Shown here: positions 17,107 to 23,233 of the stretch, in pieces | Position numbering within the stretch: the stretch's first letter is position 1 | Layout: each line of letters starts with the position of its first letter | Assembly (NCBI GenBank): GCA_001179505.1 | Contig: CDMY01000563.1 | Coordinates: 1 to 51,537, forward strand | Direction of reading: 5' to 3' | Length of the DNA: 51,537 nucleotides | Source of the DNA: Vitrella brassicaformis CCMP3155 | Lineage: Eukaryota > Protista > Chromerida | The notes under the pieces: model-generated | Told to the model about the DNA's origin: nothing | Database searches by the model: none | What the model saw: only the letters and a program-made list of their open reading frames with translations | Position numbers and translations under genes: made by a program

Positions 17107-17406
17107 NNNNNNNNNNNNNNNNNNNNNNNNNNNNNNNNNNNNNNNNNNNNNNNNNNNNNNNNNNNNNNNNNNNNNNNNNNNNNNNNNNNNNNNNNNNNNN
17201 NNNNNNNNNNNNNNNNNNNNNNNNNNNNNNNNNNNNNNNNNNNNNNNNNNNNNNNNNNNNNNNNNNNNNNNNNNNNNNNNNNNNNNNNNNNNNNNNNNNN
17301 NNNNNNNNNNNNNNNNNNNNNNNNNNNNNNNNNNNNNNNNNNNNNNNNNNNNNNNNNNNNNNNNNNNNNNNNNNNNNNNNNNNNNNNNNNNNNNNNNNNN
17401 NNNNNN
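17107..17406. other. Assembly gap (300 N) flanked by C-rich tracts
   Basis: N run. Confidence 1.
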
Positions 17407-17526
17407 CCCCCCCCTCCCAGCCAGCCATCAAGCGGCACATTCATGACGATACTTTACACACATACACACACAACACAGAGAGAGAGACATAAGGAAGGGA
17501 TAGAGCGAGAGGAGATGTATGTCTGT

Positions 17527-20500
17527 CTAGCCTCCCCGTGTGGCCGTCATGTAGACGGGAGTGTCGTCCATCACGAACTGGGCGCGCCGGGCCGTCTTCC
17601 GCACTCCCTGATGTGACACAATGGAGCGAAGGTGTGATGATGTGATCTTTCGTGCATCGGGCTGTGATGTGACTCACCTCCCAGACTGCGTGGTTGGTGT
17701 GCGCGTGTGCAGTGGTGTTTGAGTTTTTCCTGGGCGCGCCGAAGCCCTTCTTGCCGTGCACGAGCTTGTAGATGGCGCGGGAGGCCTCGTTGGCATGGTA
17801 GTGCGGCACACTGACAGACACGAGGGGAGGGAACACATTGGAGGATGGTGTTGTGTTGTGTGTGTGTGTGTGTGTGTGTGTGGCCATATATGCCTACCGC
17901 AGCTGCAGGTGTGTGAGCAGGGAGAGGCTCATGAGGTTGTGGTGGAGCGCATCGAAGACCCACAGCACATGCCTGCACACCACACACCGAAGGAAGAGCC
18001 ATTCACACACACAGGGTCACATCGGCCCAGCTGGGTGCGCGCGTCTCTAGCTCGGCAGAGCTGTCGTACGTGTTGGATCTGAGCCTCTCGGTGGCGTGTG
18101 CGAGCCACTCCCACGTGTAAAACTCGCTCTCATCGCCCTCCTCCTTCTTGGATGATGCCCCTAAACCACACACAACACAACACAATCACCACGTGCTGCC
18201 CGCCATCCAGCGAACGGTCCCACCTTTTCCAGAGTAAGCCCTGAGCAGCCTGGCGTACACACACAGCCACAGGTGCACCACCAGCAGGGGGCCACCGTGC
18301 CACAGCAGCAGCGGCGTCCTGCACACAGTTGACACAACCACACACACAAATGTCTGACTTCTTCCCCCTCCCTCCCTCTTTTTGCCAGACGGACCATCCG
18401 AGTCTGGTGCCGATGTAGTAGTTGACAGTGAGCGACAGCAGCATGCCCACGAAGCTGAGGAGCCCCTTGGGCAGGTTGAGGAACCCGAATGCATCCCACT
18501 TGAGGGCGGTCAGCAGGGAGTCCCGCGGCTTGAGCTTGGCCGTGTCGGGCACAGCCACAGCGTGGTTCCTGTAGGGGATGAGGAAGGCCGAGTGCACCAG
18601 CCACCCCAGGGTGTGGTCCACCACCTCGTAGCCGGAGAAGCGCACATTGCCGCACTCGTAGCCGATGACCCACAGACCCAAAGCTGCCGTGCCCTGAGAA
18701 TAAGAAACGCATTAAGGCAGGCACCCTTGTGTGTGTGTGTGTGTGTGAGGAGTGTGAGGGGTACCTGGACGAGGGCGTAGATGATCCAGACGGCCACTTT
18801 GACGGCGGCCATCCACTGGCTGGTCTGCGGGCCTTCCTGCAGGATGATGCTTGAGAAGACCCCCAGGCTGAGGTGGAGCACCGCCATGACCGACACCACC
18901 GCGCCGATGGCCACCACGTCACGCACAAAGGTGAACTGCATCAAACACACACACACACACACATCCATCCATCCATCCATGTGTGTGTGTGGTCTGGTAT
19001 CTCACAGAGCTGAGTAGGAGTGAGGTCCTCTGGCAGTGTGGCGGGATGACCGACTGCAGGTCCTGCTCACTTGGGATCTGCACACAGCACACCGCGTTCA
19101 CACACTCAGCAGCCTGTGTCTGTGTTGTGTGTGTATACCTTCTCGAGTGTCTGCTGCTGCGTCTCGGCTGACGTCTCGGCATTGACGGCGAGCTTGCTCT
19201 TCCGCTGCTCCCAGAACTTGGTCGCCCGCTTCCTGTCCGTCACCCAGCCAATGGCCGCCATGCTGTCGATGAAGATCTTCGCAGTGTTCCACTGACACGC
19301 CATCCCCAGCTCACTGAACAAGCACGCACACACGCTCAGGAATCATCTCACTGAGATGAGAGCTTCTCTTGACCTGGCGGCATAGTCGAAGGGATAGACG
19401 TGGTGCCAGTTGTGCCATCCCTCGCCGGTGGTGAGCCAGGCCACGAGAGCGCTCTCAGCGGGGTTGATCTGGTCGTCGTAGGGCCGCTCGCCCCACAGGT
19501 GGGCCACGCTGTTGACGCACCAGGTGGCGTGCAGCTCCACGATCCAGCGGAAGATGCCCAGCACGAAGAACCCAAGCCAGAAGCTCCCGTACACGGCCAT
19601 CGTGTAGTAGCCAGGCACAACTGCACCCACCCACACAACAACACGACGCAGTGACGTGACGGGGGGAGGGGAGGAAGGTGGAGAATGGCGGTCGGTGCTC
19701 TGCTCACTGTAGCAGAAGAAAAAGGCGAGCCACGGGTCAGCGTTCTTCTGGAAGACCACCACGGGGTCCTGCAGCAGGTCTGAGCAGTCGATCTCGCGGC
19801 CCGCCTGCTTGACGGCGTCGGGCTTCTTGAGGATGAGCCACCCCATGTGGGAGTACCAGAAGCCGCGCTTGGCGTTGTGCGGGTCCTTCTCCGTCTCAGA
19901 GTGCTTGTGGTGCGTTCGGTGGTCCCGCGCCTGCACCCACCACATACACAGAGAGAGAGGGAGAGAAAGGTTGTGCACACACACATGGGGGAAATGGGTG
20001 TGCGGTGTCTCTGACCCAGTGGTAGATGGATCCCTGGTTGGCGATGGAGTTGAGGACCATGAGGACGATGCGGGCGGGGAGGTTGGCCTTGTAGCTGCGG
20101 TGGGCCCACAGCCGGTGGGCGCCAGCTGTGATGCCCAGCCCCGAGATGTTCCAGATGAGGATCACCTCGATCAGCAGCCGCACGCGGGACGGGTGGGCGA
20201 GCATCATCATCAGGCCCACCAAAGCCAAGAAATGCATCGTTGACAAAAACACGGTCATGCCGCTGCGCACGCTCTGAAGGACGAGAAGAACAAACATCGG
20301 TTTTAACACACCACACCAACACATGGGGGTGTGCCTCACTCATTCACTGACTCACCGGGACGTAGTTCTTGAGGTAGAAGTGTGCGAAGAGGATGGTGTA
20401 TGAGAAGTACATGAGGAGTGCGCCCATGGCGTTGTTGTAGTGGGAGAGGTCGCCCGTCACCGCGGGGTTCAGCAACGCCGCGATCGTTATCGCCAGACCG

Positions 20501-21583
20501 ACAAACATCTGCACATGCAGCGCACCACACACACATGGCATAAGCGTCGCGTGCGACGTGTGCTGTGTGTGTGGGGGCATCCCCCCTCCCTCACTTGGCT
20601 GAGCTGGGCGCCGGTAATGTATGGCCGCAGCTTATACAAAATCCTGACCGATCATCACAGTACACAGACAGACAGACAGACAGACAAAGATAGATGGCAC
20701 GGATCTGTGTCGGTGGGAGTGTGTGTGTGAGTATATGTGTGTCGTTTACTTACTTGTTCCTAGCGAAAAGGACAGAGAGAGCGTAGTAGAGGTACATGAC
20801 GCCGTGGATGCAGAGGTTGATGAAGACGAACAGGTGGGCGAAAGACACATTCAGCGACTGCGCGTGCCAGCAATACAGCGCCTGAGAGATAAGATAGGCC
20901 AGCACACCCATCACACCCATCACACATGACACAATTGATTGACACAGCCGGCCTGTCGGTGCTGACCACTGTGAGGTGGTGGTAGGCATGCAGGAACGTG
21001 ATCGGCCGCTTCCGCAGCGCCAGCAGCACCGTGTCGCCGAACTCCAACGCCTTGGTCAAGGTGAACAGCGTCACCACTGCACGAGTGTTGGGCTGATCCA
21101 TCACACAAAACACAGCGACACTCACAAGTGAGACACTGTCTTTCGCCGCATAGTGCGTGTGTCGGTCTGTCTCCTCCCTGCCCACCATGTAGTCCCTCTC
21201 GTGGGCAAACGGCGTCAGAATCAGCCGCCAGTCGTCCAGAAGCTGCACACACAGCACACAGCCAGCCCACACACACACACACACAAGGGAGACAGAACAG
21301 TCACTCGACACCGCCCAGCCCAGCCACCCCCCTGTCTCGTGTGTGAGTGCTGGCTGACGATGAGTATGGCTCCGAGGATGGAGAGGACGGCCAGCACGAA
21401 GTTCCAGGCAAAAATGAAGGGCTTGATGGGCAGCGGCTCCCGCTTCCTCATCCAGTGCCGCAGCGCCATGATGACCGGCAGGTACAGCACCATCGACGCC
21501 AGTAGCGGCCACTTGAGGTCTGCCGCCAGCTGTGCGCCGCGGCCGGGTGTCCAGTACCCCTGGCTCACTGGAGAGGGCGCCAT
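17527..21583 (-). CDS. Fusion protein: ELO-family fatty-acid elongase + delta-9 acyl-CoA desaturase + FAD2/omega-6-like domain lacking His boxes (about 900 aa by hand count)
   Basis: ELO motifs: [38 protein letters not shown] motifs: [35 protein letters not shown]2-like segments: [41 protein letters not shown]. The domain junction introns 20274-20355 (CCG|GTGAGT..TTCAG|AGC) and 19078-19138 (AAG|GTATAC..TGCAG|ATC) are both phase 0 to phase 0. All introns join in frame from ATG 21583 to TAG 17527. Confidence 0.9.
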
Positions 21584-21773
21584 GGTGGTTGAGATGTGCT
21601 CGGCCGAGAGGGAGGCGCAGATCCCCAGAGAGAGGACGGGGGGACAGACAGAGAGGAGGGAGGCACAGCCAAACACAAGAGGCAGAGATCCACGTTACCC
21701 CAGCTCGCAGATCTGCGAGCTGTCCTGTGCCCGAGAGACGGCGTGTTTGGAAGCTCTACTACCGCCTAACACC
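21584..21773. promoter_or_regulatory. Probable bidirectional promoter, ELO-SCD fusion / PGM
   Basis: 190 bp between divergent ATGs; CAGATCTG at 21708-21715. Confidence 0.6.
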
Positions 21774-23233
21774 ATGCTGTCATCGTTTCTTACCTTGGTC
21801 TCGGTTCTTGTGGTGGAATTCAGTGTGACGCCATGCAGCGGGTTCGTGCTGCTGAGGCGACCCTCTGCACGGCCGTCGTCGCGGGCAGGTCTGAAGATGC
21901 AGCTGCAGTCGGTGCAGCCACTAGAGAGGGAGATCCAGCGAGTGGAGGAGGACGAGGCCAATGCGGCGGCAGGGAGGAAGGTGAAGCATGTGCTGACGCT
22001 GATCCGGCATGGGCACTCGGTGTGGAATCAGGACAACATCTTCACCGGCTGGGTGAGCTGCTGTGCGGGCAAACCCACACATCAGTGCATGCACTGCTGT
22101 CTGTGAGTGACAGCTGTATGTGTGTGTGTGTGGTCGGTGACATCAGGTTGATGTGCCTTTGGCCAAGGACGGTGAAGCAGAGGCTCGCGAGGCGGGTCAG
22201 ATCATGAAGGCGGCCGACATCAAGCCGGACAAGGTGTATGTGTCGGTGCTGAAGCGGGCCATCCAAACCACCTGGATCGCTCTCGAGGAGATGGACAGGA
22301 TGTGGCTGCCGGTCGAGTGCAATTGGCGGCTCAACGAGCGGCACTACGGCGGCCTCAGTGGACTCAACAAAATCGAAACGGTGCAGAAACACGGAGAGGA
22401 ACAGGTTAGTGAATGAGTGGAGGGAGGGAGGGATGGACAAGGGATGGAGGGAGGAAAAGGCAGCATGGGATGGAGGGTGTGTGTGGTGTGTGTCAGGTTC
22501 ACATCTGGCGTCGGTCGTATGACATCCCACCGCCCCCTGTGGACAAACACAGCCAGTACTGGCCGGGACACGACGAACGGTGACTGAGTCAGTCAGTCAG
22601 CAGGCAGGGATGACACCACACGCGCCAGCCCAGCCATCGTGCACATGTTGGTTGTGTGGCTGCACATCATCTCATCCGTGTGTGCATGTGCAGGTACAAG
22701 TTGGTGCCCGAGGATGAGCTGCCGCTGAGCGAGTCCCTCAAGCTCACCAAGGACCGCTTCATGGTGGCCTGGCAGGGCAACATCGTACCCGACCTGATGG
22801 TATGGCCGGCCAGGAACCAACACACGCTCCAGTAGCTAGCTACTTTTGCCCTTGTGTTGCCCTTGTGTGGTCTCTTGTTTCATTCATTCAGGCGGGCAAG
22901 AGGCTGCTGGTGTCGGCACACGGCAACTCGCTGCGAGCACTCGTCATGCACCTGGACGACATCAGCAAAGAAGTCATACCCTCCCTCAACGTAGGCAGGC
23001 ACACCAGCACAGCACTAAATGCTGTGTGCGCCTGCACCGGGAACGGCTCTTCATGTGTGTGTATGTGTGTGCAGATCCCGACGGGTGTGCCGCTGGTGTA
23101 CTACCTGGACAAGCAGTTGAAGCCCCTGAGGCATCCCGACGCCATCGAGCCGCTGAGCGGGCAGTATCTGGGTGACCAGGAGAAGATCAAGGCTAGGATC
23201 GGCGCCGTCAAGGCACAGACGGGGGCCAAGTGA
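21774..23233 (+). CDS. gpmA: 2,3-BPG-dependent phosphoglycerate mutase with bipartite (plastid-type) leader
   Basis: [18 protein letters not shown]|[48 protein letters not shown]|IPTGVPLVY. Leader [39 protein letters not shown]. Confidence 0.95.

Follow-up and report, generated by a model that had tools for sequence, protein, structure and literature searches.

Can a fatty-acid elongase (ELO), an acyl-CoA delta-9 desaturase (SCD) and a FAD2-type desaturase be parts of one protein, and which of the three would then still work as enzymes? The question is raised by a gene on the minus strand of contig CDMY01000563.1 of Vitrella brassicaformis CCMP3155 (17527..21583), analyzed here in a window that comprises positions 1 to 51,537 of the contig, to which all coordinates refer. 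A first-pass annotation of this DNA had read the gene as a fusion of all three domains, arranged in the order of the pathway and channeling C16:0 to C18:0 to C18:1. We consider it probable that the gene produces one mRNA for a three-domain endoplasmic reticulum (ER) protein with an active ELO, an active SCD and a FAD2-derived pseudoenzyme.

One transcription unit and one open reading frame

The coding region extends from an ATG at 21583 to a stop codon at 17529-17527 and comprises 18 exons and 17 introns, all of which are GT..AG once one-base ambiguities are resolved (Table 1). Joining the exons gives a single 885-aa open reading frame (ORF) with three domains, which is letter for letter the annotated V. 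brassicaformis CCMP3155 protein P0171 ("unnamed protein product"). A second 885-aa sequence, P0152, was rejected as the protein of the window; it is a Chromera-like sequence.

For transcript evidence, cDNA-like contigs from four small public runs (X1, X2, X9 and X10) were aligned to positions 17420-21850. The runs contain about half of the words sampled from the stretch, which is the expectation for exon-only sequence. There are 13 precise skips in the contigs, reading CT..AC on the plus strand and GT..AG on the minus strand. Both junction introns are among them and are spliced out in 4/4 runs, with joints from 20273 to 20356 and from 19077 to 19139. The remaining 4 of the 17 introns lie inside repeats that were skipped in the alignment and were placed from the record coordinates. 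One intron-free contig of 2276 nt runs from 17424, in the 3' untranslated region (UTR), through the FAD2-like part and the SCD into an ELO exon (20753-20804). The locus is one transcription unit with one spliced mRNA and one ORF.

These data bear out the earlier statement that ELO, delta-9 SCD and a FAD2-type domain share one gene. The two phase-0 junction introns, the first with a GTGAGT donor, are where the first-pass annotation had placed them, and RNA across both, which it had named as a check, is supplied by contigs of four runs with the introns precisely removed. As it had also claimed, the unspliced frames stop inside these introns (the ELO frame after NYVPVSQ, the SCD frame likewise), and the junction peptides that it had named, NYVPSVRSG and TLEKIPSEQ, are present in the 885-aa ORF. 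A joint from 20324 to 18168 (loose ends 20307 and 18185), considered as an alternative transcript, was rejected as an 18-nt CA-rich match to an unrelated contig.

The elongase and delta-9 desaturase domains

Pfam was run on the whole protein with matches reported to E values up to 1. The first domain matches ELO (PF01151) at 180 bits against a cut-off of 27 over residues 24-246, and residues 31-254 match ELOVL7 (6y7f) with an E value of 1.9e-12. All four ELO motifs are present (KxxExxDT, HxxHH, HxxMYxYY and TxxQxxQ, the last reading TGAQLSQ), and the motif columns are invariant among 18 ELO domains. In an AlphaFold2 (AF2) model, residues 24 to 244 form about seven to eight long helices; seven transmembrane (TM) helices are expected for the family. 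By sequence, domain 1 is predicted to be a complete ELO condensing enzyme of the saturated and monounsaturated fatty acid (S/MUFA) type.

The second domain matches FA_desaturase (PF00487) at 52 bits against a cut-off of 29.7 over residues 292-483. Residues 258-522 match the SCD1 structures 4ymk and 4zyo with E values of 1.5e-73 and 2.4e-73. All eight box histidines are there (HRLWAH, HRTHH and HNWHH), as is the NSVAH motif, in columns that are invariant or nearly so in a 54-sequence alignment. This domain appears to be a complete acyl-CoA desaturase, and family membership suggests its delta-9 specificity and acyl-CoA substrate. When the raw ORF pieces were searched instead, Pfam recognized ELO (pieces 20344-21583) and the desaturase (piece 19343-19984) and nothing in the third part. 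The catalytic motifs of both domains had been described as intact, and they are so in the ORF and in the alignments; the stated lack of a cytochrome b5 domain likewise agrees with the Pfam scan of the 885-aa protein, which found none.

A third domain predicted to be a FAD2 pseudo-desaturase

Residues 548-885 do not match Pfam FA_desaturase, even at E values up to 1. Profile and fold nonetheless uphold the description of this part as FAD2-like. A hidden Markov model (HMM) made solely of intact FAD2 domains matches the domain at 92 bits, and the C-terminal part of a Digyalum protein, itself an intact FAD2, matches it at 80.9 bits. The Digyalum domain in turn matches Pfam FA_desaturase at 93.8 bits and, below the cut-off of 27.8, DUF3474 at 22.4 bits; DUF3474 is the N-terminal module of delta-12 desaturases. 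Modeled by itself with AF2, the Vitrella third domain reached a predicted local distance difference test score (pLDDT) of 77.9 and a predicted template modeling score (pTM) of 0.72. Its top 30 Foldseek matches in Swiss-Prot are all delta-12, FAD2-family or omega-3 desaturases, the best with an E value of 5e-10, a TM-score of ~0.55 and ~22% identity. Together, these matches indicate a true FAD2 homolog.

The histidine boxes are largely gone, a loss that the first-pass annotation did not mention and that is established here. One of the eight box histidines is kept (the residues at these positions are Y, N, T, L, K, S, T and H), as are three of the 15 conserved histidine columns of intact relatives. 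Box 1 reads YECGN where intact relatives have HECGH, box 2 is absent, and box 3 is down to a single histidine. Two deletions have removed the stretch after box 2 and a loop of ~50 aa. We predict that the domain is a catalytically dead pseudo-desaturase, which could not make 18:2 because the box histidines and two loops are lost. The argument that domain order equals pathway order fails for the same reason, since it rests on FAD2 chemistry and the third domain is degenerate.

Predicted architecture and proposed function

AF2 modeled the full-length protein with a mean pLDDT of 87.3 and a pTM of 0.71. Some ~5 residues, with pLDDT of 96-97, lie between the final helix of ELO (216-244) and the initial one of SCD (250-272), and this short, confident gap argues for a rigid ELO/SCD junction with the two domains side by side in the model. 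The linker between SCD and the third domain (541-550) has a pLDDT of 55, with residues 544-546 below 50. ELOVL7 has seven TM helices and a cytosolic C-terminus, both termini of SCD1 are cytosolic, and FAD2-type enzymes are taken to be alike. On these topologies ELO would end and SCD would start in the cytosol, which allows the order ELO-SCD-FAD2 without extra helices; we infer that ELO can sit only first in such a fusion.

We propose an 885-aa polytopic ER membrane protein consisting of an intact ELO, an intact SCD, a short flexible linker and a dead FAD2 domain. ELO and delta-9 SCD would be held in one place and would produce C18 monoenes from C16 and C18 acyl-CoA by two possible routes: (i) SCD before ELO, with direct hand-off, converting 16:1n-7 to 18:1n-7, and (ii) ELO before SCD, leading to 18:1n-9 via the rest of the elongase complex. 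Electrons would be supplied by a separate cytochrome b5. The FAD2 domain, lacking di-iron ligands, may be retained as a membrane scaffold or partner. Such a protein could descend from one with three activities (ELO, delta-9 and delta-12), which would survive intact in Pavlovales and other protists and have undergone further decay in apicomplexan parasites.

ELO enzymes release 3-ketoacyl-CoA, which must pass through KCR, HCD and TER before SCD can use the product. The proposal of direct C16:0 to C18:0 to C18:1 channeling does not hold in that form, because those three further enzymes have to act between ELO and SCD and there is no direct tunnel. The sole possible direct hand-off is that of the SCD product to ELO (16:1 to 18:1n-7). 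Either order of SCD and ELO is possible, given that chromerids contain both 18:1n-9 (oleate) and 18:1n-7 (cis-vaccenate) (PMC7464705). Substrate channeling as such is plausible, if unproven.

Retention of the third domain and alternative readings

A dead domain might simply be neutral baggage, a decaying remnant without a role. The loss of 12 of the 15 conserved histidines and of two loops would fit this, as would the rate of change (35% identity between Vitrella and Chromera, versus 54% for ELO and 64% for SCD, making the third domain the fastest-evolving) and the absence of the domain from some relatives (Rhytidocystis, P0006 and the Vitrella paralog P0007). Neutrality is hard to square, however, with a frame that has stayed open and with TM helices and motifs (LWV..E, LLxPY and VPHYHA.EA) that persist in chromerids, coccidia, gregarines, Cardiosporidium and haemosporidia. 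AF2 also models the domain confidently, with most blocks above 85. Because frame and helices are kept across very distant lineages despite 35% identity, a membrane scaffold or interaction surface is the most likely role, and neutral baggage seems unlikely.

A polyprotein cleaved after translation into ELO, SCD and FAD2-like proteins, with no coupling in the mature products, is much less probable still. The short, low-confidence linker before the third domain would suit such processing, but the rigid ~5 residues between TM helices at the ELO/SCD junction leave little room for a protease. In addition, the malaria parasite desaturase PfSCD is reported as a 949-aa protein, and its GFP fusion was located in the ER (PMC2731242).

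Several points weigh against a single mRNA encoding a coupled, three-domain protein with a scaffold, the reading that we prefer. Contig depth over the 5' ELO exons is 1.5-3 times below that of the rest of the gene, which could reflect 3' bias or an extra internal start, and there is an in-frame methionine at residue 252, 6 residues into the SCD part. The contigs, being assemblies, demonstrate the joined form and are compatible with shorter isoforms as well. Support for the fusion is at the level of RNA and ORF. The packing of the AF2 domains against one another is judged by pTM alone, and retention is the sole argument for a scaffold, in a domain that is evolving fast. The methionine and the lower depth, like the NCBI annotation that splits the Pavlovales homolog into ELO and desaturase proteins, would be expected of three adjacent genes joined by read-through or by an assembly or annotation artifact, but we give this hardly any credence, as contigs of four runs show exact, in-frame removal of both junction introns, the spacers are just 82 and 61 nt, and the joined ORF recurs in transcript assemblies (Chromera, Selenidium, Digyalum, Rhytidocystis, Euglena and Pavlovales) and in genome annotations (Toxoplasma, Besnoitia, Neospora, Cardiosporidium and Hepatocystis).

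Distribution and evolution of the fusion

The distribution of the layout was determined by an exhaustive HMMER search with the SCD exons, a word-indexed search with the Chromera ortholog, and cluster look-ups. The three-part plan was identified in Chromera, Toxoplasma, Hammondia, Besnoitia, Neospora, Cardiosporidium, Selenidium, Lankesteria and the Plasmodium-type SCD (Hepatocystis), and also in Pavlovales sp. CCMP2436 and several metagenome proteins. The co-occurrence of ELO and desaturase in relatives, suggested earlier as a check, is thereby found in chromerids, apicomplexans and beyond. SCD and FAD2-type parts are combined in proteins of Digyalum, Euglena longa and Eutreptiella, in which no ELO domain was detected. 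ELO and SCD occur without the third domain in Rhytidocystis, Chlorarachnion, P0006, the Vitrella paralog P0007 and others.

Decay is uneven among the domains. SCD is intact everywhere in the alignment. An intact FAD2 domain is seen in Pavlovales, the euglenids, P0184, P0196 and Digyalum; in both chromerids and the remaining apicomplexans it has degenerated. Chromerids, Pavlovales, P0184 and Rhytidocystis have an intact ELO, coccidia and Cardiosporidium a degenerate one. When SCD domains were placed in a tree, every fused form from chromerids and apicomplexans fell in one clade with 98% support, which also includes the intact P0184 class; the Vitrella fusion forms a group with Chromera, Digyalum and the second delta-9 gene of Vitrella. 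The fused forms cluster strongly, but 7-8 changes of the fusion label are still required on the tree. The SCD tree allows for a single origin of the fusion without demonstrating it; the distribution would fit domain decay after one old fusion or a few.

A more specific history can be offered tentatively, as possible rather than probable. An ancient ER protein with ELO, delta-9 and delta-12 activities, capable of converting 16:0 in the direction of 18:2 within a single polypeptide and still intact in Pavlovales and some uncultured protists, would have decayed stepwise in the chromerid-apicomplexan lineage. The delta-12 domain would have died first, giving the state seen in Vitrella and Chromera, and ELO later, in coccidia, Cardiosporidium and probably Plasmodium, with the dead domains kept as a scaffold needed by the SCD core.

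The Chromera versions of the protein are Cvel_14249 and two transcript ORFs of 960 and 997 aa, the former intron-free on a transcript-like contig (L001:275-3157). Cvel_14249.t1 (P0153, 884 aa) is the ortholog of the Vitrella fusion and has the same layout. The model covers about a third of the third domain, and the 960- and 997-aa ORFs (P0003/P0151) cover all of it, so the 3' end of the Cvel_14249 model is probably wrong. The second Vitrella delta-9 gene, P0007 (565 aa, a length that matches Vbra_15445 in PMC7464705), is a close paralog that lacks the third domain. Its SCD is intact, and its ELO is degenerate, having lost HxxHH and scoring 19 bits with the HMM of intact ELOs.

Other variants on the plan were seen outside the chromerids. 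The Pavlovales class (P0181, P0177, P0178 and P0180) has an extra N-terminal region of ~280 aa (residues 1-290), which has a sub-threshold FA_desaturase match (16.9 bits at 51-106) and weak matches to the third-domain profile; it may be a fourth, relic desaturase-like module. The SCD-FAD2 fusions of euglenids and relatives (P0170, P0189 and P0192) begin with ~300 aa without a Pfam match, and the N-terminal region of the Eutreptiella protein matches the third-domain profile. In P0126 (815 aa) the domain order differs, with a FAD2-like piece preceding SCD. On a 368836-bp contig of Pavlovales sp. CCMP2436, NCBI splits the homolog into an "ELO family" protein (P0216) and a partial "fatty acid desaturase" (P0217), whereas MMETSP transcripts hold it as one 1226-aa ORF. 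Given this split, fusions are likely to be under-counted in genome annotations.

Relation to the oversized parasite desaturases

The layout seen in Vitrella probably accounts for the unexplained extra parts of the oversized malaria and Toxoplasma desaturases. The P. falciparum ortholog, PfSCD (PFE0555w / PF3D7_0511200; 114 kDa predicted), has a central catalytic domain at residues 366-622, unexplained N- and C-terminal extensions, and 18 predicted TM helices (Gratraud 2009, PMC2731242). Like the Vitrella protein as we predict it, the Plasmodium and Toxoplasma SCDs are ER proteins in which a central intact SCD is flanked by long hydrophobic extensions.

The C-terminal extensions match the intact-only FAD2 HMM in register, at 46.9 bits for Hepatocystis and 38.9 bits for Toxoplasma, which indicates that the extension is FAD2-derived in the Plasmodium-type and Toxoplasma SCDs. 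For the N-terminal extensions, relic ELO domains were sought with an HMM of intact ELOs only, from which parasite sequences were excluded. Cardiosporidium scored 52 bits, and there was no match to this HMM in coccidian or haemosporidian extensions. The coccidian extension does align to the ELO core near the WN, DT and LHxYHH motifs, with an hhalign probability of 88%, an E value of 3e-6 and 36% identity over 84 columns. Transitive phmmer searches gave weak results for the parasite extensions. No ELO signal was obtained from the haemosporidian extension with the HMM, phmmer or hhalign (probability 0.3%). The ELO HxxHH box, intact in Vitrella, is lost from the Toxoplasma "fatty acyl-CoA desaturase" (THVAGH), so in the parasites SCD would be the only domain that can be active.

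Stepwise decay, if true, would explain why PfSCD and TgSCD are extended at both termini and have 18 TM helices. Should SCD depend on the dead domains for its function, this would bear on the construction of a liver-stage-essential malaria enzyme. The family would in that case also provide a natural test system for covalent coupling of elongation and desaturation as a means of steering lipid flux.

Known systems and novelty

The mammalian counterparts of the two intact domains, ELOVL6/ELOVL7 and SCD1 (6y7f, 4ymk and 4zyo), act in the ER, where they elongate C16 to C18 and desaturate acyl-CoA at the delta-9 position. They share folds and catalytic motifs with the Vitrella domains at the sequence level. 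In animals ELO and SCD are on separate genes, whereas in Vitrella ELO takes the place of the N-terminal cytosolic tail of SCD1. Fungi have an SCD core fused to cytochrome b5, and to that extent resemble Vitrella in joining SCD to a partner on one polypeptide. The fungal partner, however, is a soluble electron donor at the C-terminus; the Vitrella partners are membrane enzymes or enzyme relics, with no b5.

The closest relatives in layout are proteins of Pavlovales sp. CCMP2436 (P0181 class, 1186-1272 aa) and the metagenome protein P0184 (876 aa), which have the same domain order. In the SCD tree, the Pavlovales domains belong to the same half as the Vitrella domain, and P0184 is inside the 98% clade. 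Unlike Vitrella, these proteins keep the third-domain histidines (HECGH, HxKHH and HxxHH) and have all three domains intact; judged from their motifs, they could in principle be capable of elongation, delta-9 desaturation and delta-12 desaturation.

Among solved structures, the closest to the third domain is FADL, a subunit of the Chlamydomonas Orf2971/Ycf2-FtsHi motor complex (8xks chain K; Foldseek E 2e-3, TM-score 0.49; profile E 2.3e-8). There a desaturase fold serves as part of a non-lipid machine. The complex is unrelated to the Vitrella protein and located in a different organelle, and FADL may be a precedent, by analogy, for structural use of the fold.

The gene itself is not new to the literature. 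Vbra_9666.t1 (885 aa) and Cvel_14249.t1 (884 aa) each appear twice in the tables of Tomcala et al. 2020, among the S/MUFA elongases and among the delta-9 desaturases, with the ER as predicted location; the text does not comment on the fusion, and neither gene is among the omega/delta-12 desaturases (PMC7464705). We assign the window gene to Vbra_9666 because its 885-aa length matches that of Vbra_9666.t1. The earlier remark that the architecture is undescribed therefore stands in part: the gene model is public and tabulated as elongase and delta-9 desaturase, and the orthologous Plasmodium SCD was characterized in 2009, but fusion and third domain are undiscussed in the papers searched. No description of a natural ELO-SCD or ELO-SCD-FAD2 fusion, or of the dead third domain, was found in the open-access literature searched. 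A large desaturase survey was limited to proteins of 350-550 aa (PMC5037126), and the fusion may have been overlooked because longer proteins were filtered out. Overall, the enzyme families, the public gene model and the partial tabulation in one paper are already known. What appears to be new is a rigid ELO-SCD fusion with a dead FAD2 domain invisible to Pfam, and a single plan that extends from fully intact haptophyte proteins to the oversized Toxoplasma and Plasmodium SCDs.

Features of the locus and its surroundings

Table 1. Coordinates of the V. brassicaformis ELO-SCD-FAD2-like gene in the window
Feature	Position	Strand	Basis
5' UTR, minimum extent	21584..21693	-	X1 and X2 contigs end at 21693
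ELO (GNS1/SUR4) condensing-enzyme domain, aa 1-246	20356..21583	-	Pfam PF01151, ELOVL7 match, motifs
ELO exons (six)	21583-21359, 21242-21186, 21092-20967, 20881-20754, 20643-20595, 20508-20356	-	Splice joints, ORF
Junction intron 1 (ELO/SCD), 82 nt, GTGAGT..CAG, phase 0	20274..20355	-	Removed in contigs of four runs; shorter side 153 nt
Predicted acyl-CoA delta-9 desaturase (SCD) domain, aa 247-547	19139..20273	-	SCD1 structures, Pfam PF00487, histidine boxes
SCD exons (four)	20273-20016, 19930-19708, 19620-19374, 19313-19139	-	Splice joints, ORF
Junction intron 2 (SCD/FAD2-like), 61 nt, GTATAC..CAG, phase 0	19078..19138	-	Removed in contigs of four runs
Predicted FAD2-type pseudo-desaturase domain, aa 548-885 and stop codon	17527..19077	-	Profile, fold, histidine table
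FAD2-like exons (first four of eight)	19077-19006, 18935-18765, 18693-18395, 18318-18224	-	Splice joints, ORF
FAD2-like exons (last four of eight)	18160-18070, 17972-17898, 17810-17678, 17607-17527	-	Splice joints, ORF
3' UTR, minimum extent	17424..17526	-	Contig pieces begin at 17424-17496

The gene lies in GC-rich surroundings, and its short introns are rich in CA and TG repeats. These repeats are polarized within the 17 introns (17608-21358): for (AC)n runs of at least 3 units, the 5' halves contain 94 nt and the 3' halves 0 nt; for (GT)n runs, the 5' halves contain 8 nt and the 3' halves 94 nt. Pairing between the two ends of an intron is therefore conceivable.

An assembly gap (an N run ending at 17406) adjoins the 3' UTR. 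Agreement between the window and contigs of X9 and X10 breaks off at 17456 and 17487, and behind 17472 there is one additional C in X9. Either mis-assembly of the 3' UTR near 17406-17487 or the use of alternative 3' ends could be responsible.

On the other side, a plus-strand gene at ~21990-23233 is arranged head to head with the fusion gene. It resembles histidine phosphatases of the phosphoglycerate-mutase type, with an RHGHS motif, and its exon at 22153-22416 matches Pfam His_Phos_1 at 50 bits. The start codons of the two genes are a few hundred bases apart, and one X9 contig extends beyond 21850.

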